DNA of 64,000 nucleotides from the sequence record MZ443769.1; one strand, given 5' to 3'. Made by a program: the position numbers and the translations under genes. This document shows positions 6,670 to 59,309 of this stretch, piece by piece; position 1 is the stretch's first letter, and every line of letters starts with the position of its first letter. The notes beneath the pieces were generated by a model, which saw only the letters and a program-made list of their open reading frames with translations, was not told the DNA's origin and searched no databases.

Positions 6670-8349
6670 TTACAGAGACAATGACGTGGAGGTACTGCCT
6701 GACGGATTGATGTTGAAGCGATAGATCAAACGCTTCGCAGCGCGTGTCGGGTCGAGCACGATATCAAGAATCAGGTCGCCATTGGCAATTGACTGATTAG
6801 TGTTGTTCGTGCTATCGCAGACCACAACATAGCCCTGACTACCAGAGTTACCGCCACGCAGACCGCGAGCGAGCTTGATAGTTTCGAGGAAGCGTTCAAC
6901 CATACCTTTCAGATAGTCACGCAGAATCTGGTCGTTCGGATCAAACAGACCGACACGACAAGTTCTCTGACAGATTTCGAGCACGTAGCCTACCATGCGC
7001 TGAATCTGAATCTGCTGGAATGCAGAGTTCTGATTGTACAGAGTATTCGATTCCCACACAGCGTAACCGCCACCAGAGATATCAGGCAGTTTACGGATGT
7101 AGTTCACTTGCTCGCGTGTCATTGCATCACGGTCATCTTGATCGTATTTCTGAGTAAGACCTACGAAGTCGAGAACCTGAGAAGCAGTGATACCAGCCGG
7201 TGCGAACCAGCTACCGCGATTGTTATCAGTGAATGCGAACACAGCACAAATCTGACCAACGTTTGGCACAGTGAAGTAACGCCCAGTATCTTCATCGAAG
7301 ATCTTAACATCAGGAGTATACAGCGCCATGTTTTTGTTGTTCAGGTTCAGTGTCTGACGACGATAGCGAATCGCTTTGGCAACGGATTGCTGGTCAGATG
7401 GAACGGCTGCGACAACGAAACAGTTGATGTGGTTGTTTGCAGCAAGCGCCATACCGCGATGAACGATATAGTCTTCAATGCCGCCAGACACAAGCAACGT
7501 CACACGGATTTCTTCTGGGTCAGAGTAGTACGTCTGATATGCAGCAGCAAGCTGGTCAGAAGTAACACGCGCACCATCAGAACCACCCTGGAAGAAGATG
7601 AAGTCTGAGGTGAAGAAATCAATGTCAGTCGTGAAGTACGGGTTCTGGATGAAGCGGAAGTTTGAGCTTTCGTTTTCCATCACAGTACCGATGCGATACT
7701 GACGGTCGAACTCATCCTTGTAGTCAGTTAAGCTACACTGATAAGTATTCACTGGAGCACTACCCGCCTGATAGTTTTCGTACTCGTCGATGTAAAACAG
7801 TTTAGTGTTATACTTCGTACGGTCATCAAACGCGCTCAGACCTTTAGGCACAGCAGGACGAATCTGCATAGCCATGAAGTTGTTCCAGTCTCCTGGGTTT
7901 TCGAGAATAACGTAGCCGATGACGTTATCATTCAGAGGGTCAGTTGGCAAGAAGCCAAGACGATCTGGTGAATCGACACCTACAACATTACCGTCTTCGT
8001 CAGTATATGGAGTCAGACGAATAACAGGCTGCAATGCAGTCGGATCATCAACAGTGAGAACGCCGACAGCGTACAGCGCACCGTTAGTGATACGAACATA
8101 GTTCAGTTGGTTGGTTTGTTTTGCAATTGGCTCTGCGATATACAGGCCCAAACCGTACTTTGGATCTTTAAGACCGAAGATGTTTTTCAGGTCGTCTTTA
8201 CCACGTACAGGGACACGTTGGTTAACAGGACCGCGTCGACCCTGCCCCACCATGCCCACAACAGACGTAGATAAAGACGTTGCACCCACGGACAAGTCTC
8301 GAACGCCAGTGTAAACACCAGCGGAGGAATGTGTCGAGTTTACGGGCAT
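6670..8349 (-). CDS. Contractile tail sheath protein
   Basis: 559 aa; N-terminal SAGVYTGVRDLS, GMVGQGRRGPVN, FQGGSDG, WFAPAG and C-terminal FDPND..LR motifs typical of T4 gp18-like sheaths. Confidence 0.92.
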   Translation of the reverse strand: MPVNSTHSSAGVYTGVRDLSVGATSLSTSVVGMVGQGRRGPVNQRVPVRGKDDLKNIFGLKDPKYGLGLYIAEPIAKQTNQLNYVRITNGALYAVGVLTVDDPTALQPVIRLTPYTDEDGNVVGVDSPDRLGFLPTDPLNDNVIGYVILENPGDWNNFMAMQIRPAVPKGLSAFDDRTKYNTKLFYIDEYENYQAGSAPVNTYQCSLTDYKDEFDRQYRIGTVMENESSNFRFIQNPYFTTDIDFFTSDFIFFQGGSDGARVTSDQLAAAYQTYYSDPEEIRVTLLVSGGIEDYIVHRGMALAANNHINCFVVAAVPSDQQSVAKAIRYRRQTLNLNNKNMALYTPDVKIFDEDTGRYFTVPNVGQICAVFAFTDNNRGSWFAPAGITASQVLDFVGLTQKYDQDDRDAMTREQVNYIRKLPDISGGGYAVWESNTLYNQNSAFQQIQIQRMVGYVLEICQRTCRVGLFDPNDQILRDYLKGMVERFLETIKLARGLRGGNSGSQGYVVVCDSTNNTNQSIANGDLILDIVLDPTRAAKRLIYRFNINPSGSTSTSLSL

Positions 8350-12902: not shown

Positions 12903-13186
12903 TAGAGTAGCCCTTGGTCGAAGCACTGAATCACAGTGAAGTTGATTTCCATATCACTGTGATTAACAGGGCTGCCCGGATAGAAAGTGACTGCACCTGT
13001 AGTCTCAACGTTTGTGATTACGCACACGTCTTTCAACAGCATGAAACCTAAGTCCAAATCGAACTTAGTTTCAGGCAGTGCTGCGTCAAACACATGACAA
13101 TTAACAGCAGCACTGTGATGATCCATCAGAATCTTATGCAGACTCTGGCTGAAAGGAATCTTGTGTTGTGTCTGAATAGTTCGCAT
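12902..13186 (-). CDS. Hypothetical protein
   Basis: TGATG coupling to the helicase stop. Confidence 0.65.
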   Translation of the reverse strand: MRTIQTQHKIPFSQSLHKILMDHHSAAVNCHVFDAALPETKFDLDLGFMLLKDVCVITNVETTGAVTFYPGSPVNHSDMEINFTVIQCFDQGLL

Positions 13187-14784
13187 CAAAATCTCCTCAA
13201 GCCCAAGTTAGAAGGGAGTCCTTTCTTAGGCGCTTCTGGTTCGAAGTAGTCTGGGAGTTCTGCGGACATTGCTTCGTCTCGCGCTACAACGCCCATCCAA
13301 TCTCGAAGTTTCTTCGGAGTACGTTTCGCTTTACCATACCCAAACTTCCAGCACATCTTGAGAACAGACCGAGCACACTGCATCGACTTGTCCATGTTCT
13401 CGTCAATGAACATGCGAATGACAGGCGTTCGCTTGTTATCCATAGGAGTTAGAATACGACACGATTCCTGTTTCCAGTTCGGTTCGTTATTCATAGGCAT
13501 GATGTAGTACAACGTATCCCACTTAGGTACGTTCAGGCCACGCTGCATCAGTCGGCGCATACCAACTACACAACGAATCTTACCTGCACGTGCATCGTCG
13601 ATGATTTGCTTACGACGCTTCGCATGACCACCACCAAGGAACACGGAAGCAATCTCTTCTCCGTAGTGCTCATTGATACGACGCACAAGTTTCTGCGCTT
13701 GGTCAGTAAACATGATCGGAATCGCAATCGAACGACCAGCATCGAGATCTTTGATAATCCATTCGAAGATCTTATCGTTACGGTCTGGATGTGCTGCAAG
13801 GAATTTACAGAAGCGTACCCAACCGCTCTTGTTATTGTAGTTCGCTTTCGTTTGAACCAACTTACTCGTCTTATGTAGCGTGACTTTCGGTACGAGTTCT
13901 TCAACGAAGGCTTCTGCAACAACAGGTCCGATGATTGACGTGATCAGATAATCACGTTTGTCCTTACGCCACGGTGTTGCTGTCAGACCAAAGCGATACT
14001 TCATCTTTAGACTGGCGAGTGTCTGACTATAACACTGAGCACCACCAGCGTGGACTTCATCAATGAACAGCGTTCCGTAGTTCTTGTTCAACAGCTTGAG
14101 GCGCTGCTTGGAAGTTTTGCTGTCACTGATCAACGACTGATAAGTAACGAGAATAATCTGGAAGTTCTCGTAGTCATCGAGTGTCTTCGGGAACCCGTAT
14201 AACTTCTTGCCGTACTTCTCTTCAAGTTCAGGCAAGTTAGTCATTTGCTCAATCGTCTCTAAGAAACCATCGAGGAAGTCTTTCTGGTCAGCCATGATGA
14301 TTGTGCGGAAACCAGAGTGACAAGCGCCAGCAGTACCGATGACTGTTTTACCAGAACGAGGAGGTGCTTTAAACACACCACACAATTCACCGAAGAGATC
14401 TTTAAACGGTTGTTGCTGATAATCACGAAGCGAGCCTGTGAACTTCACTTTATAATCAAACGGCACACGACTCGTACCGTTGATGAACTTCACTTCTGAC
14501 AGGTCAAGACCAGAAGTCTTTTCGAAGCGGTGCATCTCACCGTACGGAATTGATACATAGCGCTTGCCTTTGATTTCAGAATACTTGGCGAGCACTGTGA
14601 TATCGAGAAGACCGCCCTTAGAACAAGAGCGACATTCCGTAGATGGTCTAATGGAACGAAACTCGCAACCCTTACAGGCTGCGTTATCGAACTCATAATG
14701 CGTCATCTTCTTTATGATGTTGTCAGCGTCCACACACTTCACTGGAATGTGCAGACGGCTGTCGACCAGTACTTTGGCTGTCAC
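13186..14784 (-). CDS. Superfamily 2 DExH helicase, UvsW-like
   Basis: LRDYQQ Q-motif, APPRSGKT Walker A, DEVH, GLTATP, RGLNVP, QESCRILT; N-terminal CxxC..CxxC. Confidence 0.9.
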   Translation of the reverse strand: MTAKVLVDSRLHIPVKCVDADNIIKKMTHYEFDNAACKGCEFRSIRPSTECRSCSKGGLLDITVLAKYSEIKGKRYVSIPYGEMHRFEKTSGLDLSEVKFINGTSRVPFDYKVKFTGSLRDYQQQPFKDLFGELCGVFKAPPRSGKTVIGTAGACHSGFRTIIMADQKDFLDGFLETIEQMTNLPELEEKYGKKLYGFPKTLDDYENFQIILVTYQSLISDSKTSKQRLKLLNKNYGTLFIDEVHAGGAQCYSQTLASLKMKYRFGLTATPWRKDKRDYLITSIIGPVVAEAFVEELVPKVTLHKTSKLVQTKANYNNKSGWVRFCKFLAAHPDRNDKIFEWIIKDLDAGRSIAIPIMFTDQAQKLVRRINEHYGEEIASVFLGGGHAKRRKQIIDDARAGKIRCVVGMRRLMQRGLNVPKWDTLYYIMPMNNEPNWKQESCRILTPMDNKRTPVIRMFIDENMDKSMQCARSVLKMCWKFGYGKAKRTPKKLRDWMGVVARDEAMSAELPDYFEPEAPKKGLPSNLGLRRF

Positions 14785-16941: not shown

Positions 16942-17206
16942 CTCTGTCCTCTAAAACGAATTGTAGTATACCCTCTACATTTACAGCCTTTAATCTCTTC
17001 GAGGTAGGCATAAGCATACCGTTGAGAAGGCCAAGCAAGTCTGCACTGTGGCAGTCAGGTGCAATCTGGTGAACGTAGATATCTTCGGGAATATCCTGAG
17101 GGTTAAGCTGCCAAGCAGTACGCAAGGCAGCACCCATGAAAGCAGGACGTTCCACCAAATGTCTGTTCAAGAAAGAACAAATGTCTTCGGCGGTTAGTGC
17201 TGTCAT
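16919..17206 (-). CDS. Hypothetical protein (95 aa)
   Basis: ATGA coupling to the polymerase stop. Confidence 0.65.
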   Translation of the reverse strand: MTALTAEDICSFLNRHLVERPAFMGAALRTAWQLNPQDIPEDIYVHQIAPDCHSADLLGLLNGMLMPTSKRLKAVNVEGILQFVLEDRDEDLPTA

Positions 17207-20200
17207 TTCTTCGTTATACCCTTCAACGCTGATTTAAGAATCTTACTGCTGATTTTGATTTTCTTCTTAGCACCATCAACAGAAGCCGCTGCTTTCTTCG
17301 CTGCTTCTTCTGCTTCGTACTTCTCAAACATTTTTGTGTTCTTCGGCAATTCTTTCTGCCAAAGCTCGATGTTCTTTTTGTCTTTGTTGGTCAGCGGATT
17401 CACTTTAGACATTGAACGGATCTTAATGTTGTTTGCCCAAAGTTGTTTCTGCATCCAGTCAGACATGAGGTGATACTGATCTTCCATAATGCTATCAGTT
17501 GTCGCCTCTACATCGAGGTCAGGTTCATTCAGTTCATCACGCTTGATGATCAGACCATTCGTAATCAGCTTGCGTAAGTTTGTGAATGAGAAGTCCCAAC
17601 CTTTAACGTCTTTCTCGGTAGCACCGATTTCGAAGTCGATTTCAGGTACGGAAGTAAATTCAAATCCAGGATGACGTTGCTGTACGACTTCGACCACTGC
17701 GCTTGTCATGGCTCGTTCGATCATATCGAGTGCGAGGAATATCCACTTGTAGTCACAGTCAACGGTCAAGGAGTCATGTACAGATACGTTCATATCGAAG
17801 TCAGGATATTCTCCATGCGACTTCCAGTATTCATATTTCATTCGGTCGAGAATACGAATCGCGGACATCATCAAGTCTGAACCGAAGCCCTGCACTGGAC
17901 TGTTTACCGCACGTCTATCACACGCAGCATGAACGATGTTCGATTCTTTGTGCGACTCAGGAAGCATGAAGCCCCACAAGTGGCGACGACGACCAACTGG
18001 TGATTCAACAAAGAAGTTCTCATGAGCAAACTTCTTAATCTTATCAAACCATTTCAATCCGATAGGGAATCTGTCGAGGAACTTACTCTTGATCTCGACG
18101 ATCTCTTTCACATCACGACCAGTAGACTTCGCAAGACCTTTATCACCCTGCTGATAAATCAAGCCGAAGATAACTGTCTTAACCGCGTTACGAATCGCTT
18201 TCGTAACTTCCATCACAGGGATACCGAAGAAGTATGCGGCGTTAATCTTATGCACGTCCCCTTCGACTTCTACTAAGTGACTAATCCATGGATCTGGAAC
18301 AGTACGATAACGATGGCGAAGTTTACGACCTTGTTCGAATACGTCAGCAACGCCTTGGTCACCTGAGATGATAGACCAGCCCCTTACTTCGTGGGCTGAG
18401 TAGTCGACCTTGATAAGTAAACGGTTCTTACGCGAGATAAGAATACGCTTGATCAACTTACCCATCTCACTACGACTCGGCACCTGCTGTAAGTTCGGGT
18501 CAGATGCAGATGTACGACCTGTCACAACTTTCAGATAGCTGTACGTTGGTCGAATCGATCTGTCGTGTCTAAAGTCATCGGATGTTCCCCACAACTTCAA
18601 CAGGCTGTTAACGTAGGCGTTCTTGAGTTTGTACGCTTTACCCAGCTTCGTATACAGTGCAACAATCGTAACGTCTGCATACGCTGCTTGGAAGTCTTTA
18701 TCGAGCTTACCAGCTTTCTTACCGTTCTCACGGACTTGGCTGTCGCTCTCTTTAAGAGGCTTGAGCTTCATCACGTCAAAGAACAGGACTTGCTTGTGCT
18801 CGGACTTGGACATATCAAACTTCGTTACTTCGACAGCGCCCATAAGACCCATCTTAGGAACATTGTCGTCAACGCAGATTGCTTTGTTTGCAGCACGTAC
18901 CTCAGGACTCGACATGAACTCTCGTTCAACGTTTCGAATCTCTTCATTGATAGGACTGTTAGGCAGGTTCAGCTTAAACAGGTAATCAATGTCAGCGCCA
19001 GCACCTGTTACTTCCAGAATACTGAACGCATGAATCTGGTCAGAGATTTGTTCACGCACCATCGACTCATACTTCTTGTACTTAATGTCTCTGGCTCGTT
19101 GAATCTGTTTCTCTGCAATACGGAATGGAATGATAACGTCAAGGCCAGCATATTCCTGAACGTTTTCATCAAGTTCAACGTCAGCAATGGTTGCTCGCAT
19201 CTCTTTACCGAACGACACTTCATGGTAAACAGTACACCCGTACTGCATCGTGAGGTTCGCTAAGTTGTAATAACCTTGACCGGTAACAGACAGCAGTGAC
19301 TTGGCGTTTTCGTCAAAGGCAAACTCACCTGCTTGAATATCCCACACGTCGGCGGCATAACTACGAATGCCGAAGTTAGAGCGCATAACGTTCAGGTCGA
19401 ACTTCGCATTGGTATAGATCTGATAATCGTTTTCGTTCTCTTCGAAGTAGTCACGAAACATCTCTTTGATCTTGCGCAGTTCTTTCGGACTGAATGGACT
19501 GTCCTTGTGATACACAGGAATCACATACGCTTTCTTGCCATCGTCCGATAACTGCACCGTCAAGATTTTATTCTTGATACGATTCAGGTTCTCGGTTTCT
19601 GTATCGACTGCAACCTTCTTGGCGCGCTTCATACGCTTCAAGATCTTTTCGAGTTGCTTGACCTTCGTTACATACACGAGGTCCCAGTTACGCTTCTTAC
19701 CACACGTCACTGTGTCGATCTTATACTTCATACCCTTGTTGAGCCAAGGCAACATCCAACGACTCATATAACCAATCGTATACGATGATGCACTGATAAG
19801 TCCAGGGTTCAGTACAATGTTATAGCTAACGTTAGGCAAGTGGATGAAGCTATGCTTACGACCATCTGCTTTTACTTTAGTTGGAATCTCAACACCGTAC
19901 CAGTGTTCATAGTGCTCTTTCGAGAACTGAATCTTTTCGTTGTTCAAGGCTTTGAACGGAGCCTTACCAAAAGTCAGAACATAGTCTGGCTTATAGTCAA
20001 CGATGATTCCTTTCAGACGTTCTGCAAATGCTGCGTCTGCATCGTCTTTATACTGCTCGGTCTTCTCATACGTCTTAAACATGTTGTATGAGATAACCAA
20101 GAAGTTCCAATCATCCAGAGTAGTCTTGGTGCGAAACACATCTTCAAGATACTGAACCTGATTCAGAAATAACTCACCCTCAGTCGAACTGAATATCTTA

Positions 20201-20367
20201 CCGTTACGCAAGTCATCAGAAGGCATATGGTCGAGGACGATTAGTGCTTTACCGCCTTTGGCACTCGTACTGAGGCCTTTAAGAATTCGAACACCATCAT
20301 ACGTCTGCACGTCTGCAAACTGTTTGGGAGGGTCGAAGTCGATAGCTATGTGCTTGGTCTTCACCAT
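17203..20367 (-). CDS. polA: Family A DNA polymerase with N-terminal UDG-like and 3'-5' exonuclease domains
   Basis: Exo I AVDTET, Exo II NAKFD, TGRTSASDPNLQQVP, motif A DYSAHEVR, motif B RNAVKTVIFGLIY, motif C VHDS. N-terminal ~230 aa with KPDYVLTFGKAPF resembles a UDG fold. Confidence 0.95.
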   Translation of the reverse strand: MVKTKHIAIDFDPPKQFADVQTYDGVRILKGLSTSAKGGKALIVLDHMPSDDLRNGKIFSSTEGELFLNQVQYLEDVFRTKTTLDDWNFLVISYNMFKTYEKTEQYKDDADAAFAERLKGIIVDYKPDYVLTFGKAPFKALNNEKIQFSKEHYEHWYGVEIPTKVKADGRKHSFIHLPNVSYNIVLNPGLISASSYTIGYMSRWMLPWLNKGMKYKIDTVTCGKKRNWDLVYVTKVKQLEKILKRMKRAKKVAVDTETENLNRIKNKILTVQLSDDGKKAYVIPVYHKDSPFSPKELRKIKEMFRDYFEENENDYQIYTNAKFDLNVMRSNFGIRSYAADVWDIQAGEFAFDENAKSLLSVTGQGYYNLANLTMQYGCTVYHEVSFGKEMRATIADVELDENVQEYAGLDVIIPFRIAEKQIQRARDIKYKKYESMVREQISDQIHAFSILEVTGAGADIDYLFKLNLPNSPINEEIRNVEREFMSSPEVRAANKAICVDDNVPKMGLMGAVEVTKFDMSKSEHKQVLFFDVMKLKPLKESDSQVRENGKKAGKLDKDFQAAYADVTIVALYTKLGKAYKLKNAYVNSLLKLWGTSDDFRHDRSIRPTYSYLKVVTGRTSASDPNLQQVPSRSEMGKLIKRILISRKNRLLIKVDYSAHEVRGWSIISGDQGVADVFEQGRKLRHRYRTVPDPWISHLVEVEGDVHKINAAYFFGIPVMEVTKAIRNAVKTVIFGLIYQQGDKGLAKSTGRDVKEIVEIKSKFLDRFPIGLKWFDKIKKFAHENFFVESPVGRRRHLWGFMLPESHKESNIVHAACDRRAVNSPVQGFGSDLMMSAIRILDRMKYEYWKSHGEYPDFDMNVSVHDSLTVDCDYKWIFLALDMIERAMTSAVVEVVQQRHPGFEFTSVPEIDFEIGATEKDVKGWDFSFTNLRKLITNGLIIKRDELNEPDLDVEATTDSIMEDQYHLMSDWMQKQLWANNIKIRSMSKVNPLTNKDKKNIELWQKELPKNTKMFEKYEAEEAAKKAAASVDGAKKKIKISSKILKSALKGITKK

Positions 20368-50254: not shown

Positions 50255-51547
50255 TTATTTAGAAGACTTCTTCTTCTTTTTCTTCTTAGGTTTTTCTTCG
50301 TCGTCTTCTTGTTGATCGCCGAATGAGACGTTCAACTGACCGCTATAAATCTGCGCCATCAATTCAGTCACAGTTGATTCCAACATGATATCGGCAGGCA
50401 CAGAAGTTGAGTTGAATGCAATCTCTGCATTAGCCAACGCTTTCTGCAAAAAGATCAAGCGTACTAAGTTCACACTGATCTTATCTTGCTTAACCATGTT
50501 CAGGAACATCTTGAGTCCAGCAGACTGCCACTTGTTTGTTTCGGCGTAATGACCGAGAACACCATGCAGCACCCAACGAGCTTTCACTACGATAGCACGA
50601 GGGTTGTTCGCTTCACGTAAGAACTGAATCACACCAATAAGATCCATCTCGTGGAATGCACCAATGACTTGAACAGCTTTGGCTTCCATTTCAATTTCAG
50701 GATCGGCTGCTGCAAGTTCTGCAACCAGCTTCTTATCGAAGTCTTCACCACCGAGCACGGACGAGTAAACGTTTTGCAACATCGAGATTGCACCACGCAT
50801 CTGACCACCAGCGTATTCAGCAATCTGGTGCATTGCTGCTTCTGCTTTCTCACGCGCTTTATCTTTCTTAGGCAGGATTTCGAGCTTGCCTGCGATTTCA
50901 ATCAAACGAGTGTGAATGATATCAGTCGGTACAGGTCTGATTGGAAGCTGAGTCATACGACCGACCATCGTACCTTTCATCTTCTCTGGGTTCGTCGTAA
51001 TGAAGATGAACACAACGTGAGCTGGCGGCTCTTCCGTAATCTTCAAGAACTTCGACTCTGCGGCACTGGACATTAAGTGGCATTCGTCGAGAATGAATAC
51101 ACGGCGTTTGAACAGCGCGTTACGAGATGCAGAGTCAACGATGTTCTGGCTACCGTCAACTTTACCTGCATCACCACCCATATCGTATTCTTGAATATCA
51201 GGATGTGAGTCAGGACCTGCATCAGCCATCTGACAGGAACGACATTTACCACATGCGCTGAACGTGTCGCAGTTGATGTACTTAGCAACCATACGACCGA
51301 ACGTTGTTTTGCCTGCGCCTGTGTGACCACTGATCAGAATAGTTGAGGGGATGACACCAGACTTCTTCCAGCCACGAAAGATTTTGACAATGTGATCTTG
51401 ACCAACATAGTCTTCAATACGACGTGGACGGAACTGAGCACCGAAGTTAATAGTCTTGAGTTCTACAACGTCCGTGCTCTTACTTTTCTTTGAAGGCTTA
51501 TCGTCACTGAATGCACGAGCCTTCTTTTTCTTTTCTACTTTCGCCAT
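50255..51547 (-). CDS. dnaX: Clamp-loader ATPase, DNA polymerase III gamma/tau-like
   Basis: FRPRRIEDYVGQ, GHTGAGKT, zinc CDTFSACGKCRSC, FILDECH, GGQMRGA; start MAKVEKK at 51547. Confidence 0.9.
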   Translation of the reverse strand: MAKVEKKKKARAFSDDKPSKKSKSTDVVELKTINFGAQFRPRRIEDYVGQDHIVKIFRGWKKSGVIPSTILISGHTGAGKTTFGRMVAKYINCDTFSACGKCRSCQMADAGPDSHPDIQEYDMGGDAGKVDGSQNIVDSASRNALFKRRVFILDECHLMSSAAESKFLKITEEPPAHVVFIFITTNPEKMKGTMVGRMTQLPIRPVPTDIIHTRLIEIAGKLEILPKKDKAREKAEAAMHQIAEYAGGQMRGAISMLQNVYSSVLGGEDFDKKLVAELAAADPEIEMEAKAVQVIGAFHEMDLIGVIQFLREANNPRAIVVKARWVLHGVLGHYAETNKWQSAGLKMFLNMVKQDKISVNLVRLIFLQKALANAEIAFNSTSVPADIMLESTVTELMAQIYSGQLNVSFGDQQEDDEEKPKKKKKKKSSK

Positions 51548-51582
51548 TTTAAATCGCCCTTTGATTTTGTCTCTACTCGCTA

Positions 51583-51591
51583 TATTTACAG
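51583..51591 (-). promoter_or_regulatory. CTGTAAATA motif upstream of dnaX
   Basis: Exact motif after a terminator. Confidence 0.7.
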
Positions 51592-51610
51592 TATTCGGCA
51601 GTGTACAGAC

Positions 51611-51648
51611 AAAAAGAAAGGACCACATCCCAAAGCGGGAGGGTCCTT
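51611..51648 (-). terminator. Probable terminator
   Basis: Minus strand AAGGACC..GGTCCTTTCTTTTT. Confidence 0.6.
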
Positions 51649-51949: not shown

Positions 51950-51989
51950 TTAAATCCAGTTCAAATCCTGAACTAAAGTAAGACTAATC

Positions 51990-52340
51990 TTAAACTCCAA
52001 TATGCTCTCGTAAAAACATATTGGAGTTAGCCCTCGACAGATGACGGTCTATCGAAGACTATCCCCCTGCACTCTTGTATGTACGTCAGTGCAGGAACGT
52101 TCGCGGTCTTATGCGCTATATCTCGCAGCAGGGTTGGCAGCAGGTAGCAGGGTCCCTCGCTGCATAGCGCGGCCGCACTTCGGCCATCAGTGTTACGCGG
52201 TGTTACGCGGTGTTACACTGAGCGGCCTTGACTCTTTGGCCGAGTCGGTACAAAAAAGTGTCTGGCCCACAATGAAGGCATGAAGCATTCGGGCCAGACC
52301 AAAACTTTCGAAGCAAACTCCTTATGCCTCGTTTTGTACA
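51990..52340 (-). ncRNA. Candidate structured non-coding RNA or origin-like locus
   Basis: No credible ORF; at least six inverted repeats of 5-12 bp, a 10-nt tandem repeat, and a CTAATTTTTAC motif at 52342-52352 pointing into it. Confidence 0.45.
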
Positions 52341-52344
52341 TGTA

Positions 52345-52352
52345 AAAATTAG
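52345..52352 (-). promoter_or_regulatory. CTAATTTT(TAC) motif with no downstream ORF
   Basis: CTAATTTTTACATG, the same 14-mer as before the H1-like gene. Confidence 0.6.
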
Positions 52353-52379: not shown

Positions 52380-52967
52380 TTAGTCTAACATTGGAATAAA
52401 GTTTTCGAGGAAATGCTGGCGATCAAACGAGCTAATACGATGCGGATGATCGATGTGCGCGTTCCATGGTTGGGTGAACAGCAATACGTTCTTCGGAAGT
52501 GCTGATACATCTCCGACGCGAGTAAAGTTGTTCGTTACCTGAGTACGTGGGTTGTCGTCAATCAGGTAGTAACCGTCTTCACCGTGAATTGAATTCAAGA
52601 AAGCAATCTTATCAGGATGCTCTGCTGGATTCAGTACGTGAATGTGATCGAACATCGACAGGTGAGGAGCCAGAGCTTTGCGAGTATAACGTTCACCTTT
52701 CTCATGATAACCACGATGCGTACAAACACCGAGAGAGAATCCTTCACGCAACAGGAAAGAAAGCGTTTGAATGAAGTAATCATTCATGTCAACTTCTAAC
52801 ATGAAGCGACCGCTCTCCAGCAGATCAACGAAAGGCTTGCCACCAATCTCAGGAGTGATGTAGCGATCTTCGACCATGATGCCGTGGCCTTGCAGATGGA
52901 GATTCATGTACAAGTGAGTACGGAATCCCGTGTCATCTAAGTCAACGTAAATAGGTTTCAAGTCCAT
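52380..52967 (-). CDS. HAD-superfamily 5'(3')-deoxyribonucleotidase-like protein
   Basis: IYVDLDDT (DxD), VCTHRG, LIDDNP, LFTQPWN motifs. Confidence 0.8.
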   Translation of the reverse strand: MDLKPIYVDLDDTGFRTHLYMNLHLQGHGIMVEDRYITPEIGGKPFVDLLESGRFMLEVDMNDYFIQTLSFLLREGFSLGVCTHRGYHEKGERYTRKALAPHLSMFDHIHVLNPAEHPDKIAFLNSIHGEDGYYLIDDNPRTQVTNNFTRVGDVSALPKNVLLFTQPWNAHIDHPHRISSFDRQHFLENFIPMLD

Positions 52968-55344: not shown

Positions 55345-55569
55345 CTATTTCTCTTCTGTTGGGTATGATACAGGACTAGAAGTCTTGTAGAAGTTAAAAT
55401 CCGTGTTGAAACGAACAGAGGCGCGAGACACTTCTGTTTGTGCCCGCACCGACTTCTGCTGTTTGCGTTTGTTGAGAGACTCACGACGATCGAGGTCGTC
55501 AAAGATACCAGACCGTCTGTGGTACTTGAACTTCGGATGCACTGAAATATCTTTGACGATAGCGGTCAT
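55345..55569 (-). CDS. Hypothetical basic protein (74 aa)
   Basis: ATGA coupling to the upstream gene. Confidence 0.6.
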   Translation of the reverse strand: MTAIVKDISVHPKFKYHRRSGIFDDLDRRESLNKRKQQKSVRAQTEVSRASVRFNTDFNFYKTSSPVSYPTEEK

Positions 55570-56591
55570 TTTTTATATTGTCCCGTTACTGAATAGATAA
55601 GAGATTTTTTGTACAGCCGAGCATTGACGATCAGATACTTAAACTCTTTGGTCACATCAAGCTCGCCTCCAACAACTTTGGAGATTGGAATATTTTCGAT
55701 ATCAGCAATAGTCAAGGCTGTACCCATCTCACTGAAAGAAAACGAAGAAGACAGGGAAAAGCTGTTCAACGATTTCTTTGAAATGTTCGATGGGTGTTTA
55801 CCATGTTGACGTTTTGCATCAAGCCAGTTCTGCCAGTCACTCGTTGCATGATTCATAGAACGAAGAATTAGCGAGCGTGGAACTGTACTTGGATATTTCT
55901 TACGAAACTCCGTGACGACAGTAGAGACAGGAGGACCTGCTGATACGCGACGTTTATCTTTGAGTACCTTTCTCAGGTAGTCAGACCAATGAGAATAAGC
56001 TTCGACTCGAATCTGGATATACTCGTCCAGACGAATCGCTTGCTCGATACTGCATTCAATTTCGAATGTCACCAAAGAACCGCGATGACGTTCTTGGTTT
56101 GGTTTGTGTCGCGCATCCTGTTTAGCAGCCTGAATTTCAGAAGACACTTTATCACGAACACACGAAGCCCAAGCATAAACGAGCGTGAGACGCATGTCAG
56201 GTCCGTCAACTAAAACTTCAGGATAGAATTCAAGCAGCAATGGAATTGCATATCCAATCGCGCATCTGCGCTCGATGTACGCGGACTTGAGTTCACCGAT
56301 ATTCAGTTTACCCTCGGCAGAAAACATCTCTTTGGTTTGTTTGTGTGAGTCGGCTATTGCACCGCCTTCCCCTAGAACATCAGCCACAGTCAGAGTAGAT
56401 TTTGCTATGGCTGCATATGCTTCTTCGATTGAAACATCAGGCCAAGTACGGTAACCAGTTTCATCGAGGACAAAAGTCCTACGACAATACAGCTCGTAGA
56501 TGTGCAAAAAGTCCGCGACAGACAGACTTGATGGGTACACGAATTTTTTAGTTACTTTCTTTGGCGTGATACCGGCTTTTTTCTTAATCAT
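55566..56591 (-). CDS. Hypothetical protein; C-terminal half resembles TnpB REC/WED without RuvC
   Basis: By-eye similarity of TFEIECSIEQAIRLD..TEFRKKYPSTVPRSLILRSMNHATSDWQNW..HP..SKK..SF to the IS200/IS605 TnpB N-terminus. Confidence 0.45.
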   Translation of the reverse strand: MIKKKAGITPKKVTKKFVYPSSLSVADFLHIYELYCRRTFVLDETGYRTWPDVSIEEAYAAIAKSTLTVADVLGEGGAIADSHKQTKEMFSAEGKLNIGELKSAYIERRCAIGYAIPLLLEFYPEVLVDGPDMRLTLVYAWASCVRDKVSSEIQAAKQDARHKPNQERHRGSLVTFEIECSIEQAIRLDEYIQIRVEAYSHWSDYLRKVLKDKRRVSAGPPVSTVVTEFRKKYPSTVPRSLILRSMNHATSDWQNWLDAKRQHGKHPSNISKKSLNSFSLSSSFSFSEMGTALTIADIENIPISKVVGGELDVTKEFKYLIVNARLYKKSLIYSVTGQYKK

Positions 56592-56598
56592 CGCTTTC

Positions 56599-58281
56599 TC
56601 ACTGGAGTTTACTAACTATTTTTTGATACTCTCTATTTACAGTTTCTATATCGGTAGAGAACCCTCTCTTCGTGAATAGATTACGTCTAACGGTACCCAT
56701 ACGCAAGCTGTTCTCCCACAAGCGCATAAACAACAGGCTATTAAGAGTCGGTGTCATGAAAGGTTTCTCTTTCAGTTCAACATCCCCTTTGTAATCCGTT
56801 AGCAGGATAGCACCATCGAATTCCGCACTACACCACTCGGTCTCAGCCAAGATCTTGAGAAGGTTATAGCTCTCTTGACCTTGAACATAATGACTAAGCA
56901 CGGTGTACTTGTCTTTGTTGAAGAGTTCGATCTTCACAGAGTGCGAACACTGGACGCTATTCTTAAAATGATATTCGCCGCCCCTGCAATACGAGGAGTC
57001 TCTGATTCTATCGCAGAGTTCAGAAACAACTTTACCTGCAGGCTCAAATAGTTTTTTCCATCTGTCCCAAATCCAATCAACGTAGTCCGCTAACTCCTTG
57101 TCATCGAACTTATTCTTTTCTGCAACACGTTGAATTTTCGGGTCGCTGCATAGTTGACGATAGATATCAGTTTTTACAGGACGTGGTTGCTCGTCATCAG
57201 ATCTGCTTTCAAAATGTTGACGGAACCACTGGCGATTACTCCAACCACTATAGATACCACCGTAGTTAAGAGTCTTCGCTGTGCCCCTGCTTATCTTCAA
57301 ATATTTAGCAACAGCATCGTGATCAAGTGCCTCAAGCTCAGGACATTCAAGCCCATACTCCGCCAAGAGTTCTATGAGCAGGACCATCTGAGCATTCGGC
57401 ATATCGAAGTTACGGCCATACGAATGATCGAAGCATAACAGCTTAACCAACTTAGGCATAGCAGCAGCAGTTCCAAAAAGCCTTGAGCCTGTTGGGTTCA
57501 TTTTGTATATGTCGTAAAACTCGACAAGCCTGTCATTCGGGTCGTCGTTAACGAGCTTAAACCCAAACTTGCACACGCGCTTTAAGAATATATCGAGACG
57601 GAAATGCAGGCCGTCTTTTCGATTTGTCTTAGCGTTTTTCATTATGTCAAGGAATCGGTCGAGATAGAATCTATACGGACGTTGATTCTTTTGAGCCTTG
57701 TTAATGAGTGTTATCAGTTCGGAGCTACGTCCCCTGTGCTGTGAAAAGTTATCAGGTCTGACGAACGGTTTTGGTTTTATCGACGTACGGAACGAGGACT
57801 CAACTAAATCTTTCTCGTTAACGTAAATAGGTCTACGCCTCAGAGGTTTCATCAGGTTGTACATGGGTTCATCTTCAACGCACAAACTCGTAAACGTGGA
57901 TAAAATCGTTTTATTGAGCGTGTACTTACGGGCAATCCCCTTAACGTAATCGTAACGTGTTCTGTCGACCCTTTTGTCCAACCAAGCTTGCACGGAATGC
58001 GCTTTCCATCGGACTAAGGCATATCGCATCTTTTCATGAGCCCGCATGTACGTGTAGGTGACTACGGTTTCATTATAAATGTTTCTACGGTCAGAAATCT
58101 TCGACTTATCGATCAGGTGCATGAAAAACCAAGCTAAACTCTCGTAAAACTTATCAGATTTAGCGTTCGGTGGCTTTGGACAGGAATAAATCATATCCCA
58201 GAAGTATTTATGCGCTGATCTTTGTACCGTGGCTGCCCACCCTGGTAGCTCGGCTTTCTTTTTGAACACGGCCTTGGCCAT
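56599..58281 (-). CDS. Minimal PolA-superfamily (TV-Pol-like) polymerase/primase
   Basis: GSRLF, motif A-like NFDMPNAQM, motif B RGTAKTLNYGGIY, YVQGQES, motif C-like EFDGAIL; no exonuclease motifs seen. Confidence 0.6.
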   Translation of the reverse strand: MAKAVFKKKAELPGWAATVQRSAHKYFWDMIYSCPKPPNAKSDKFYESLAWFFMHLIDKSKISDRRNIYNETVVTYTYMRAHEKMRYALVRWKAHSVQAWLDKRVDRTRYDYVKGIARKYTLNKTILSTFTSLCVEDEPMYNLMKPLRRRPIYVNEKDLVESSFRTSIKPKPFVRPDNFSQHRGRSSELITLINKAQKNQRPYRFYLDRFLDIMKNAKTNRKDGLHFRLDIFLKRVCKFGFKLVNDDPNDRLVEFYDIYKMNPTGSRLFGTAAAMPKLVKLLCFDHSYGRNFDMPNAQMVLLIELLAEYGLECPELEALDHDAVAKYLKISRGTAKTLNYGGIYSGWSNRQWFRQHFESRSDDEQPRPVKTDIYRQLCSDPKIQRVAEKNKFDDKELADYVDWIWDRWKKLFEPAGKVVSELCDRIRDSSYCRGGEYHFKNSVQCSHSVKIELFNKDKYTVLSHYVQGQESYNLLKILAETEWCSAEFDGAILLTDYKGDVELKEKPFMTPTLNSLLFMRLWENSLRMGTVRRNLFTKRGFSTDIETVNREYQKIVSKLQ

Positions 58282-58652
58282 TTTTAACCTCAGAACAACT
58301 TTCTTGGTTGATCTTTACAGAATCTCTGGCTGATCATGGTATATACGCTGTATAAATGCTTGTTCTAGCAATTCTCTACCCAAAGTTGATATCAGGAGGA
58401 TATCTATCAGATAGGTTAGGTACAGCTTCATCTACATGCAGCTTGAGCGCACTATAGTCACACGAAATTCATACCATAGACCGATGAGGGAGCGTCCAAA
58501 AGTATTCATTAGGCGAGTAGTGATATGTCCAGAGGTGCGAAAGGGCTAAACCGTCTATAGGCGCCTTTTTTGGTGTCAATTCGGGATTTTCTCAATCTAA
58601 CGTATGCGTGATTAAATCCTTGCACCTCTGGAGCGATTCTGTAGGGAGTCGG

Positions 58653-59309
58653 TTATTTTTTGCGCGAAACCTTCTGCCCCAGTTTTACGCCAATCTGCGT
58701 CATAATGCGCTTAACGGTATCTCCGTCATGCTCCGCCATAGCCTGCGCAAGCCTTTCGCCCTGCTCGCGTGAAAGTTCAGGCATAACCATTTTAAGCATA
58801 GTCGAACGCATTTGAGCGCTCTTGCTGCGCTTTTTCGACAGCGAGGTCGTTTCCATCTCCTGCGCTACTCGGCGCATTGTACGTTGGACGCGACGATCAG
58901 CGAAGATATCACCAAAGATATCGCCGAATAGGTCTTTGAACGACATACCGCCTCCCATTACATCGTCCTTTGTGAAACGAACAGGCTGTCCGAGCGCATT
59001 CGTTTTAGCGCAATGTGTAGATTCGACAGCGTTTTGAATGCGATCGCCCGTGCGCGTTACTTCGTCAGGACGTGACGGCTTGCCCTCTGCTCCAGGATTT
59101 GTATCACCGTTACGCAGCGCAGGGTCACCTTCAACTTGTTTGTTTTGATCAAACATGTCATCGGCTGTAGCGCTTTGATTCGGGTCAAACGGAATCTTGC
59201 CTGTAAGCTTGTTAGGGTCAGGATACGAACGAGGGATATCAGACGCAGGCTGAGGCATGTTCGTCATATCGCCGTTCTTTTCGCTATTCAAACTAATCAT
59301 TACTCGCAT
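58653..59309 (-). CDS. Hypothetical protein with MRVMISLNS leader
   Basis: Start 59309 with AAGGA SD; low-complexity N-terminal half. Confidence 0.7.
   Translation of the reverse strand: MRVMISLNSEKNGDMTNMPQPASDIPRSYPDPNKLTGKIPFDPNQSATADDMFDQNKQVEGDPALRNGDTNPGAEGKPSRPDEVTRTGDRIQNAVESTHCAKTNALGQPVRFTKDDVMGGGMSFKDLFGDIFGDIFADRRVQRTMRRVAQEMETTSLSKKRSKSAQMRSTMLKMVMPELSREQGERLAQAMAEHDGDTVKRIMTQIGVKLGQKVSRKK

Follow-up and report, generated by a model that had tools for sequence, protein, structure and literature searches.

What use could a virus have for half of an RNA-guided nuclease? The question is raised by a gene of pEp_SNUABM_52, a jumbo phage (261 kb; species Sasquatchvirus Y3) that infects Erwinia amylovora, the fire-blight bacterium. 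We analyzed a 64-kb stretch of its genome record, MZ443769.1 (here called the window; subtracting 124000 from a record position gives the window positions used below). The gene in question lies on the minus strand at 55566..56591, begins with ATG, and encodes a 341-amino-acid (aa) protein, QZE56078.1, which carries only the annotation "hypothetical protein" in MZ443769.1. A preliminary description of the window had placed this open reading frame (ORF) at exactly these positions and had proposed that it encodes a domesticated fragment of TnpB, the ancestor of all Cas12 enzymes. We describe evidence that the protein consists of two domains, a helical N-terminal half and a TnpB-type REC lobe, and that the gene is strictly paired with a neighboring gene for a small DNA polymerase; we refer to it as the REC-lobe gene.

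The C-terminal half of QZE56078.1 resembles the REC lobe of TnpB in structure. We built an AlphaFold2 (AF2) model from an alignment of the QZE56078.1 family; its mean predicted local distance difference test score (pLDDT) was 75.9, with the helices of the C-terminal half at 76 to 89, and its predicted template modeling score (pTM) was 0.49. In this model, a strand (residues 173 to 179) is followed by long helices at 182 to 209, 223 to 230, and 239 to 258, then by a strand (277 to 280), a helix (286 to 292), and three more strands up to residue 339. Such an arrangement, a WED barrel of the oligonucleotide/oligosaccharide-binding (OB) fold with the helical REC domain inserted between β1 and β2, is a feature of TnpB. 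WED strand β1 (residues 173 to 179; 56055..56075, minus strand) bears an F-x-I-E-C motif, in which F176, I178, and E179 vary little or not at all. The REC insertion (residues 182 to 258; 55818..56048, minus strand), which includes an invariant helix start, P238-R239-S240, was modeled with a pLDDT of 76 to 89 and aligns with TnpB REC by both structure and profile. The rest of the WED barrel (residues 277 to 339; 55575..55763, minus strand) completes the protein, which ends where the WED-RuvC linker of TnpB begins; model residues 168 to 341 align with TnpB residues 1 to 175. Given the published boundaries of ISDra2 TnpB (WED, 1 to 12 and 117 to 176; REC, 13 to 116; RuvC, from 185; PMC10097598), this alignment identifies the phage domain as a complete REC lobe that ends at the linker to RuvC.

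When we searched the PDB with Foldseek, a comparison that the preliminary description had recommended, the first 29 matches listed, to an E value of ∼0.8, were exclusively TnpB, Fanzor2, or Cas12 chains. The top template modeling (TM) score, 0.57 when normalized to the target, was for an ISDra2 TnpB chain in which only WED and REC are resolved. A second look at the Foldseek candidates gave 42 superfamily members in succession, separated by a gap of >6 Z units from unrelated folds; here the model was aligned to all but 12 residues (154 of 166) of 8ex9_A, a chain that comprises only the REC lobe. An independent full-library aligner also matched the C-terminal half to TnpB-type WED/REC, with identities of 8 to 16% in the structural alignments, and a search of BFVD with the model returned "transposases" of the TnpB/Fanzor kind from giant viruses and phages. 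One viral BFVD entry of 165 aa (UPI001E6E5A2C, rank 41) matches the model over its REC lobe alone (TM score, 0.57, target normalized; 152 columns) and has the length of gp217 of phage Y3 (165 aa); further REC-lobe-only viral proteins may exist.

Sequence comparison gave the same register. Against a profile of 10 TnpB sequences, whose reference genes with PF01385 came from Nostoc plasmid pCC7120alpha and Campylobacter phage CP220, the C-terminal half scored 46.6 in hhalign (E = 5e-6; probability, 86%), with query residues 172 to 278 (extending to 324) falling on profile positions 10 to 120 (extending to 171). The controls were clean: the best of 40 column shuffles scored 17.9 (E = 0.12), the reversed alignment 14.4, and the N-terminal half 12.6. 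The preliminary description had recognized, in residues ∼180 to 341, the order of TnpB N-terminal features, an order borne out by both the AF2 model and the hhalign alignment; the motif pairs that it had matched by eye (the strand plus EQ helix, the VPRS helix, and a basic P..K.. segment) were paired identically by hhalign. It had also named the lack of any profile or structural match to TnpB REC/WED as grounds for giving up the idea, and we found matches of both kinds. Since the profile match falls in the register chosen by eye and its controls are clean, we take common ancestry with TnpB as established with high confidence: the C-terminal half (174 residues) is very probably a diverged homolog of the TnpB/Cas12 REC lobe, without RuvC. 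The TnpB REC/WED interpretation is supported by Foldseek, by the full-library aligner, and by the sequence profile.

What is missing from QZE56078.1 is the whole nuclease lobe. The protein ends at the WED/RuvC boundary, short of any RuvC or zinc finger as had been noticed earlier, and the domain with the RuvC D-E-D triad is absent from it and from all family members. For the TNB zinc finger, we found no sequence beyond WED and no Zn-ribbon match in Pfam; the OrfB_IS605 RuvC domain (PF01385) was not found anywhere in the Y3 genome. The nuclease lobe (RuvC plus the zinc-finger TNB) is deleted in its entirety, and a helical domain of ∼165 residues has been added in front. Nor is the REC-lobe gene part of an insertion sequence (IS). 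A TnpA/Y1 transposase (PF01797) was not found in five complete related phage genomes, and there are no IS-type terminal repeats or hairpins at the ends of the cassette described below, in agreement with the earlier report that neither IS ends nor tnpA could be seen. No ωRNA was seen at or 3′ of the gene, and there was no Rfam match, though an RNA might overlap the coding sequence. The next gene downstream, which lies outside the cassette, is 100% conserved in Y3, a phage without the REC-lobe gene. Literature searches on TnpB in jumbo phages or on standalone TnpB N-terminal modules returned nothing relevant, and a 2023 census of TnpB and Cas12 lists exapted dead forms, a mini form with WED and RuvC, and PrimPol-TnpB operons, with no REC-lobe-only form among them (PMC10691335).

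The REC-lobe gene is a working, domesticated gene and is not decaying, as judged from its full-length conservation, selection, lack of IS context, and fixed syntenic position; the word "domesticated" in the preliminary description was well chosen. Full-length homologs at 27 to 64% identity are present in 22 records of jumbo phages, all from Erwinia or Dickeya. When 1.84 billion representatives were searched exhaustively with a profile, only six clusters at 50% identity emerged, the longest member having ≤389 aa. The ratio of nonsynonymous to synonymous substitution rates (dN/dS) was 0.10 to 0.27 against two relatives, for both halves of the protein, which indicates purifying selection; in a metagenomic variant that is ∼95% identical across the whole cassette, 26 of the 30 listed ORF differences are at third codon positions. 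Searches of Pfam, PHROGs, NCBIfam, and PADLOC found nothing for QZE56078.1. At a Pfam E value of 10, the 14 family members gave only scattered noise (Trigger_C in 5 members; best E value, 0.023), and the family profile had no sequence match in the PDB. The N-terminal half (residues 1 to 167; 56091..56591, minus strand) has a basic tail followed by an all-helical domain, with model helices between residues 25 and 162. Folded only within the full-length model, it had no match in the library and profile comparisons run; this, along with its score of only 12.6 against the TnpB profile, agrees with the earlier statement that the N-terminal half is unrelated to TnpB.

The neighborhood of the gene suggests a partner. 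Only 7 nt separate its ATG from the stop codon of the upstream gene, which encodes a 560-aa polymerase without an exonuclease (pol560; 56599..58281, minus strand), assigned to the Pol A superfamily and described as TV-Pol-like from its motifs and fold. The stop codon of the REC-lobe gene in turn overlaps the start of the next gene. Because of the 7-nt gap, pol560 and the REC-lobe gene are probably cotranscribed and translationally coupled. pol560 belongs to phrog_30690 (function not annotated), and sequence hints of Pol A are weak: hhalign comparison with canonical Pol A was not significant, though motifs A and B fall in register. A later fold search confirmed the Pol A fold, and no exonuclease domain was matched. 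Nine very divergent pol560 homologs share invariant residues R267 in the hairpin, D293 in motif A, and K336 in the fingers, as well as an H...G.E motif and the E-x-D-G of motif C (D489). The TV-Pol core defined by Iyer et al. (PMC2579912) comprises a thumb, a β-hairpin Arg, two catalytic Asp residues, and R/K-x-x-x-K in the fingers, with no exonuclease; pol560 has this minimal core, its class being assigned by the published feature list and the fold.

pol560 is a second polymerase: the canonical replicase (1054 aa, with 3′-5′ exonuclease and DNA_pol_A domains) is encoded elsewhere, at 17203-20367. The "hairy" phage clade to which pEp_SNUABM_52 belongs (PaBG/Y3/Yoloswag/AD1) has its own replicase, of uracil-DNA glycosylase (UDG)-exo-Pol I composition, together with a β clamp and a clamp loader (PMC7412058). 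The sole pol560 homolog outside this clade is that of Vibrio phage vB_VcorM_GR7B (locus L039; MT366760.1, 108766-110622), with 24% identity over 68%; it keeps all catalytic motifs, and its neighbors on either side encode a Rep-type helicase and RNase HI, which places it among genes for replication and primer processing.

Some observations on this polymerase gene are recorded here in their own right. The pol560 copy of one metagenomic variant (run X6) has gained 1 nt and lost another 5 nt away (window 57886-57891), a compensated change of frame that affects about two codons. Annotations in three relatives are probably faulty: the polymerase-like gene of Dickeya phage AD1 (L036, 2405-4021) is annotated from 2969 although its frame is open from 2405; that of pEa_SNUABM_5 (record 180527-182191) is labeled "putative helicase"; and in locus L003 (5242-6993), the start of the longest ORF lies upstream of a conserved spacer motif, so that the true start is probably ∼69 nt later. 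Among metatranscriptomes, a single one, from wastewater, has fragments of the sequence, as contigs. One contig of 267 nt matches 56576-56841 with 100% identity but reaches only 16 nt into the REC-lobe gene, too little to establish cotranscription with pol560, and it may stem from DNA carryover.

The two genes also move together. Y3 is 98.3% identical as far as 55569 and again 96.3% identical from 58657 onward, but no part of the DNA in between can be aligned; these breaks define a single exchangeable cassette of 3.1 kb (3087 bp; 55570..58656), which consists of a noncoding spacer, pol560, and the REC-lobe gene and is bounded exactly by the neighboring genes. At the same site, Y3 has a 3084-bp alternative that encodes a polymerase with 22% identity and two unrelated small genes. 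A polymerase-like gene occupies this position in ∼40 records, and at least four partner types are found behind it: the 341-aa REC-lobe fusion, 174 plus 165 aa, 174 aa only, and 167 plus 164 aa (surveyed at window 55570-58656; L001, 4071-7154; L007, L036, L037, and L038). The types are spread patchily among otherwise near-identical genomes, which argues that the cassette is exchanged through recombination within the genes on either side. A record has the REC-lobe gene if, and only if, its polymerase is of the pol560 lineage. Both cassette genes have diverged in step with each other and more rapidly than the flanking DNA; at locus L006, a flanking gene is 60% identical, the REC-lobe protein 26%, and the polymerase ∼19%. 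Nearby genes function in replication: in addition to the polymerase, they encode a clamp loader (50255-51628) and a polynucleotide kinase (PNK)/phosphatase-like protein (phrog_415; 52380-52967). The idea that gp218 and gp217 of Y3 represent a split QZE56078.1 was discarded, because BLASTP and hhalign, the sequence comparisons made, revealed no relation, even with more family members.

This coupling to pol560, on which the preliminary description did not remark, changes the most likely function. We lean, somewhat beyond even chances, toward the view that QZE56078.1 is the nucleic acid-binding partner of the adjacent polymerase, analogous to the partners in PolA-SSB primases (SSB, single-stranded DNA-binding protein); the relationship rests on gene order, coinheritance, and analogy. 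In the CcPol-MP/PolA-SSB systems, an A-family polymerase without an exonuclease owes its template binding and primer-independent synthesis to a small, highly variable OB-fold protein encoded downstream (PMC10061031; PMC10201439). The REC-lobe gene has the corresponding position, as it directly follows a gene for a polymerase of the A family that has its catalytic residues intact and no exonuclease. WED is itself an OB fold, and the WED-REC cleft of TnpB binds the duplex of the transposon-associated motif (TAM) and starts its unwinding (PMC10097598). QZE56078.1 and pol560 may thus form one machine, a two-protein primase/polymerase in which QZE56078.1 would be the nucleic acid-binding subunit. 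Its basic WED-REC module would hold or position the template or start site, as the small OB-fold protein MP does for the CcPol primase of SCCmec (staphylococcal cassette chromosome mec), and its N-terminal half may dock onto the polymerase. In TnpB, the ωRNA scaffold lies on WED plus RuvC and the heteroduplex channel is formed by REC plus RuvC; only the TAM-duplex cleft belongs to WED plus REC (PMC10097598). Since the TAM-type cleft is retained and the guide RNA surfaces are lost, we favor DNA binding, to a template or start site, over guide RNA targeting, and site- or structure-specific binding of DNA would be more likely than RNA guidance. SSB or MP structures were not among the 50 entries listed in the full-library structure search of the model.

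Several observations weigh against such a partnership. Confidence in the AF2 model is medium (pLDDT, 76; pTM, 0.49), and just one of the five models was good. QZE56078.1 is a 341-aa, two-domain protein, whereas MP-type partners are plain five-stranded OB barrels of ∼100 aa, and its cassette has no helicase or recombinase, unlike published PolA-SSB loci. The small partners in the other cassette types are unrelated to QZE56078.1 or TnpB as far as BLASTP and hhalign can detect; a partner role therefore needs no REC lobe, and gene adjacency by itself is weak evidence. Last, the Gln that contacts the TAM in TnpB is not conserved in the QZE56078.1 family, so any TnpB-like duplex readout is hypothetical. 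A bolder version of the partnership assigns targeting to the REC-lobe-only TnpB descendant: as a subunit of a minimal primase/polymerase of the Pol A type, it would recognize and wedge open a specific DNA site at which synthesis starts, possibly with a short RNA. We consider this version unlikely; if true, half an RNA-guided nuclease would have given rise to a "site-directed priming" machine, a plug-in cassette exchanged among jumbo phages.

Of the alternatives to a polymerase partner, the one that survives best would make QZE56078.1 a stand-alone, sequence-specific DNA-binding regulator. Its WED-REC cleft would read a short duplex motif, and it would autoregulate the cassette or act on other phage promoters without contacting the polymerase. 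A candidate for the motif is found in the cassette-specific noncoding spacer, a stretch of 371 nt upstream of pol560 (58282..58652, minus strand) that is swapped together with the two genes and is probably a promoter, operator, or 5′ untranslated region. The 9-mer TACAGAATC has only two exact copies in the 64 kb; they are mutually inverted and bracket the spacer. One arm (58316..58324, plus strand; coding strand, GATTCTGTA) lies ∼41 nt before the pol560 start, and the second (58635..58643, minus strand) lies just past the stop codon of the upstream gene. The promoter-proximal copy (coding strand, ATTCTGTAAAGAT) is kept in L003, L004, and even L006, the most divergent of the type-A cassettes, at ∼35 to 45 nt ahead of the polymerase start, and it is absent from the Y3-type cassettes checked. 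With no covariation, the inverted pair could be a long-range RNA stem or paired DNA sites. In favor of a regulator, the C-terminal half is also basic in all 14 family members (pI, 9.0 to 9.8), and exapted dead TnpBs are typically regulators (PMC10691335). Even so, we regard a stand-alone regulator as rather unlikely: the TAM-reading Gln is not kept, the proximal 9-mer is missing from L005 despite the presence of the REC-lobe gene there, and strict coinheritance with one polymerase lineage would be left unexplained. In addition, TAM binding by TnpB alone is weak and short range, and we know of no protein-only DNA binder derived from TnpB. With regard to other promoter-like signals, a scan for sigma-70 promoters and terminators found no excess of sites over shuffled sequences, and a conserved 14-mer of the spacer was ruled out as a general phage promoter, being unique in the window.

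The preliminary description had read the protein, if the TnpB fragment was real, as a nuclease-free RNA-guided or RNA-binding protein. A guide or scaffold RNA encoded in the spacer or at 51950-52352 would lead such a protein to DNA or RNA targets, to which it might deliver the polymerase. There are reasons to consider this: in TnpB, the WED domain makes contacts with ωRNA at stem 4 and the pseudoknot (PMC10097598), PrimPol-TnpB operons are a precedent for a link between TnpB and a polymerase (PMC10691335), and the spacer, which travels with the cassette, folds slightly better than shuffled sequences, albeit marginally (z = −2.3). However, most ωRNA contacts and half of the heteroduplex channel sit on RuvC, which is absent here (PMC10097598), and there is no cassette-specific 3′ noncoding DNA, because the stop codon of the REC-lobe gene overlaps the start of the next gene. 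Only short blocks of the spacer are conserved; RNAalifold gave a consensus of just −1.8 kcal/mol across type-A cassettes, that is, no conserved structure, and the spacer had no Rfam match and no tRNAs. On these grounds we rejected a conserved structured RNA at 58282-58652. The other candidate, 51950-52340, is part of a region with 98% identity to Y3; we rejected an RNA at 51950-52352 as the cassette-linked cognate, since Y3 keeps the region without having the gene and the two do not covary. In all, we found no evidence for a role in RNA guidance or RNA binding, and we consider one quite unlikely.

It is very unlikely, in our view, that the resemblance to TnpB arose by convergence, with an OB barrel acquiring a helical insertion independently of TnpB. 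Convergence would fit the lack of any Pfam, PHROG, or NCBIfam match, even at an E value of 10, the failure of HMMER to find a TnpB among the 1.84 billion representatives, the identity of just 8 to 16% in structural alignments, and the moderate confidence of the model. It would not account for an hhalign match exactly in the structural register (E = 5e-6) with clean controls, for 42 successive superfamily matches lying >6 Z units above unrelated folds, or for a domain that ends exactly at the lobe boundary. Least probable of all is a counterdefense decoy, a REC-lobe mimic encoded in a fast-evolving accessory cassette that would compete for DNA or guide RNA with TnpB/Cas12-type effectors of the host or of rival elements. 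Conflict genes typically show what the cassette does, namely extreme divergence and replacement of alleles between near-identical phages, but no Cas12 or TnpB target in the host is known from the evidence gathered, no PADLOC or antidefense family matched, the neighborhood is one of replication genes (clamp loader, PNK-like phosphatase, and polymerase), and the gene is under purifying selection with no sign of diversifying selection.

Elsewhere in the window, we noted genes for a tail sheath protein (6670-8349) and a ResIII/SNF2-type helicase (13186-14784), as well as very large ORFs of 1335, 1951, and 777 aa; of these, the Pfam scan covered those of 1335 and 777 aa, without a match.

A conserved, selected protein that retains nothing of TnpB but the REC lobe implies that this lobe is able to fold and function alone, a new route for TnpB reuse. 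Because the protein is strictly paired with a TV-Pol-like polymerase, it also connects two groups about which little is understood, and minimal Pol A enzymes would seem to enlist nucleic acid-binding partners of very different kinds. From a practical standpoint, an autonomous WED-REC module of ∼175 residues would be a useful minimal scaffold for studies of DNA recognition of the TAM type or of the protospacer-adjacent motif (PAM) type.

How, then, does QZE56078.1 compare with known systems? The TnpB of IS200/IS605 elements (ISDra2; PDB 8h1j and 8ex9) has RuvC, TNB, and C-terminal domains that are absent from QZE56078.1; it is accompanied by IS ends, TnpA, and a 3′ ωRNA region, none of which is present here; and its TAM-contacting Gln is not conserved in the QZE56078.1 family. 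Conversely, it lacks the ∼165-aa N-terminal helical domain of QZE56078.1. The Fanzor2 proteins of giant viruses (PDB 9b0l) are complete RNA-guided nucleases carried in a transposon. TldRs remain bilobed, with a mutated RuvC lobe and a guide RNA bound along RuvC and WED (bioRxiv 10.64898/2026.09.22.753285), whereas QZE56078.1 has lost that lobe altogether and has no evident guide RNA; the preliminary description was right to call it more reduced than such dead TnpBs. Cas12k, Cas12m, and dCas12f-sigma likewise keep the RuvC lobe and a guide RNA. Closer in kind is the GATase-associated mini-TnpB (∼280 aa; PMC10691335), likewise a shrunken TnpB lacking one module. Its loss is the opposite one, however: the mini-TnpB drops REC and keeps RuvC together with WED, whereas QZE56078.1 keeps WED and REC and drops RuvC.

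Two systems resemble the pairing with a polymerase. In the PrimPol-TnpB operons of Deinococcus (PMC10691335), a TnpB-family gene is likewise found in a predicted operon with a primase-polymerase; there, a full-length, active TnpB accompanies a PrimPol of the archaeo-eukaryotic primase (AEP) type, whereas here only a REC lobe accompanies a polymerase with the Pol A (TV-Pol-like) fold. The CcPol-MP/PolA-SSB systems of SCCmec and other elements of Bacillota (PMC7581432; PMC10061031) differ in that their partner is a plain OB protein of ∼100 aa, with a helicase and serine recombinases encoded adjacently, whereas the predicted partner described here, from a jumbo phage of Enterobacterales, is 341 aa long and has an additional domain as well as the REC insertion. 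What they share with the phage cassette is an exonuclease-less A-family polymerase with intact catalytic residues and, immediately downstream, a fast-evolving partner with an OB-type barrel (predicted in the case of QZE56078.1) that varies between loci, on DNA that is mobile or exchangeable. Taken together, these comparisons suggest that QZE56078.1 is a TnpB exaptation in which the nuclease lobe has been lost completely and the remaining lobe has entered a new partnership with a TV-Pol-like polymerase, a previously undescribed route of reuse.

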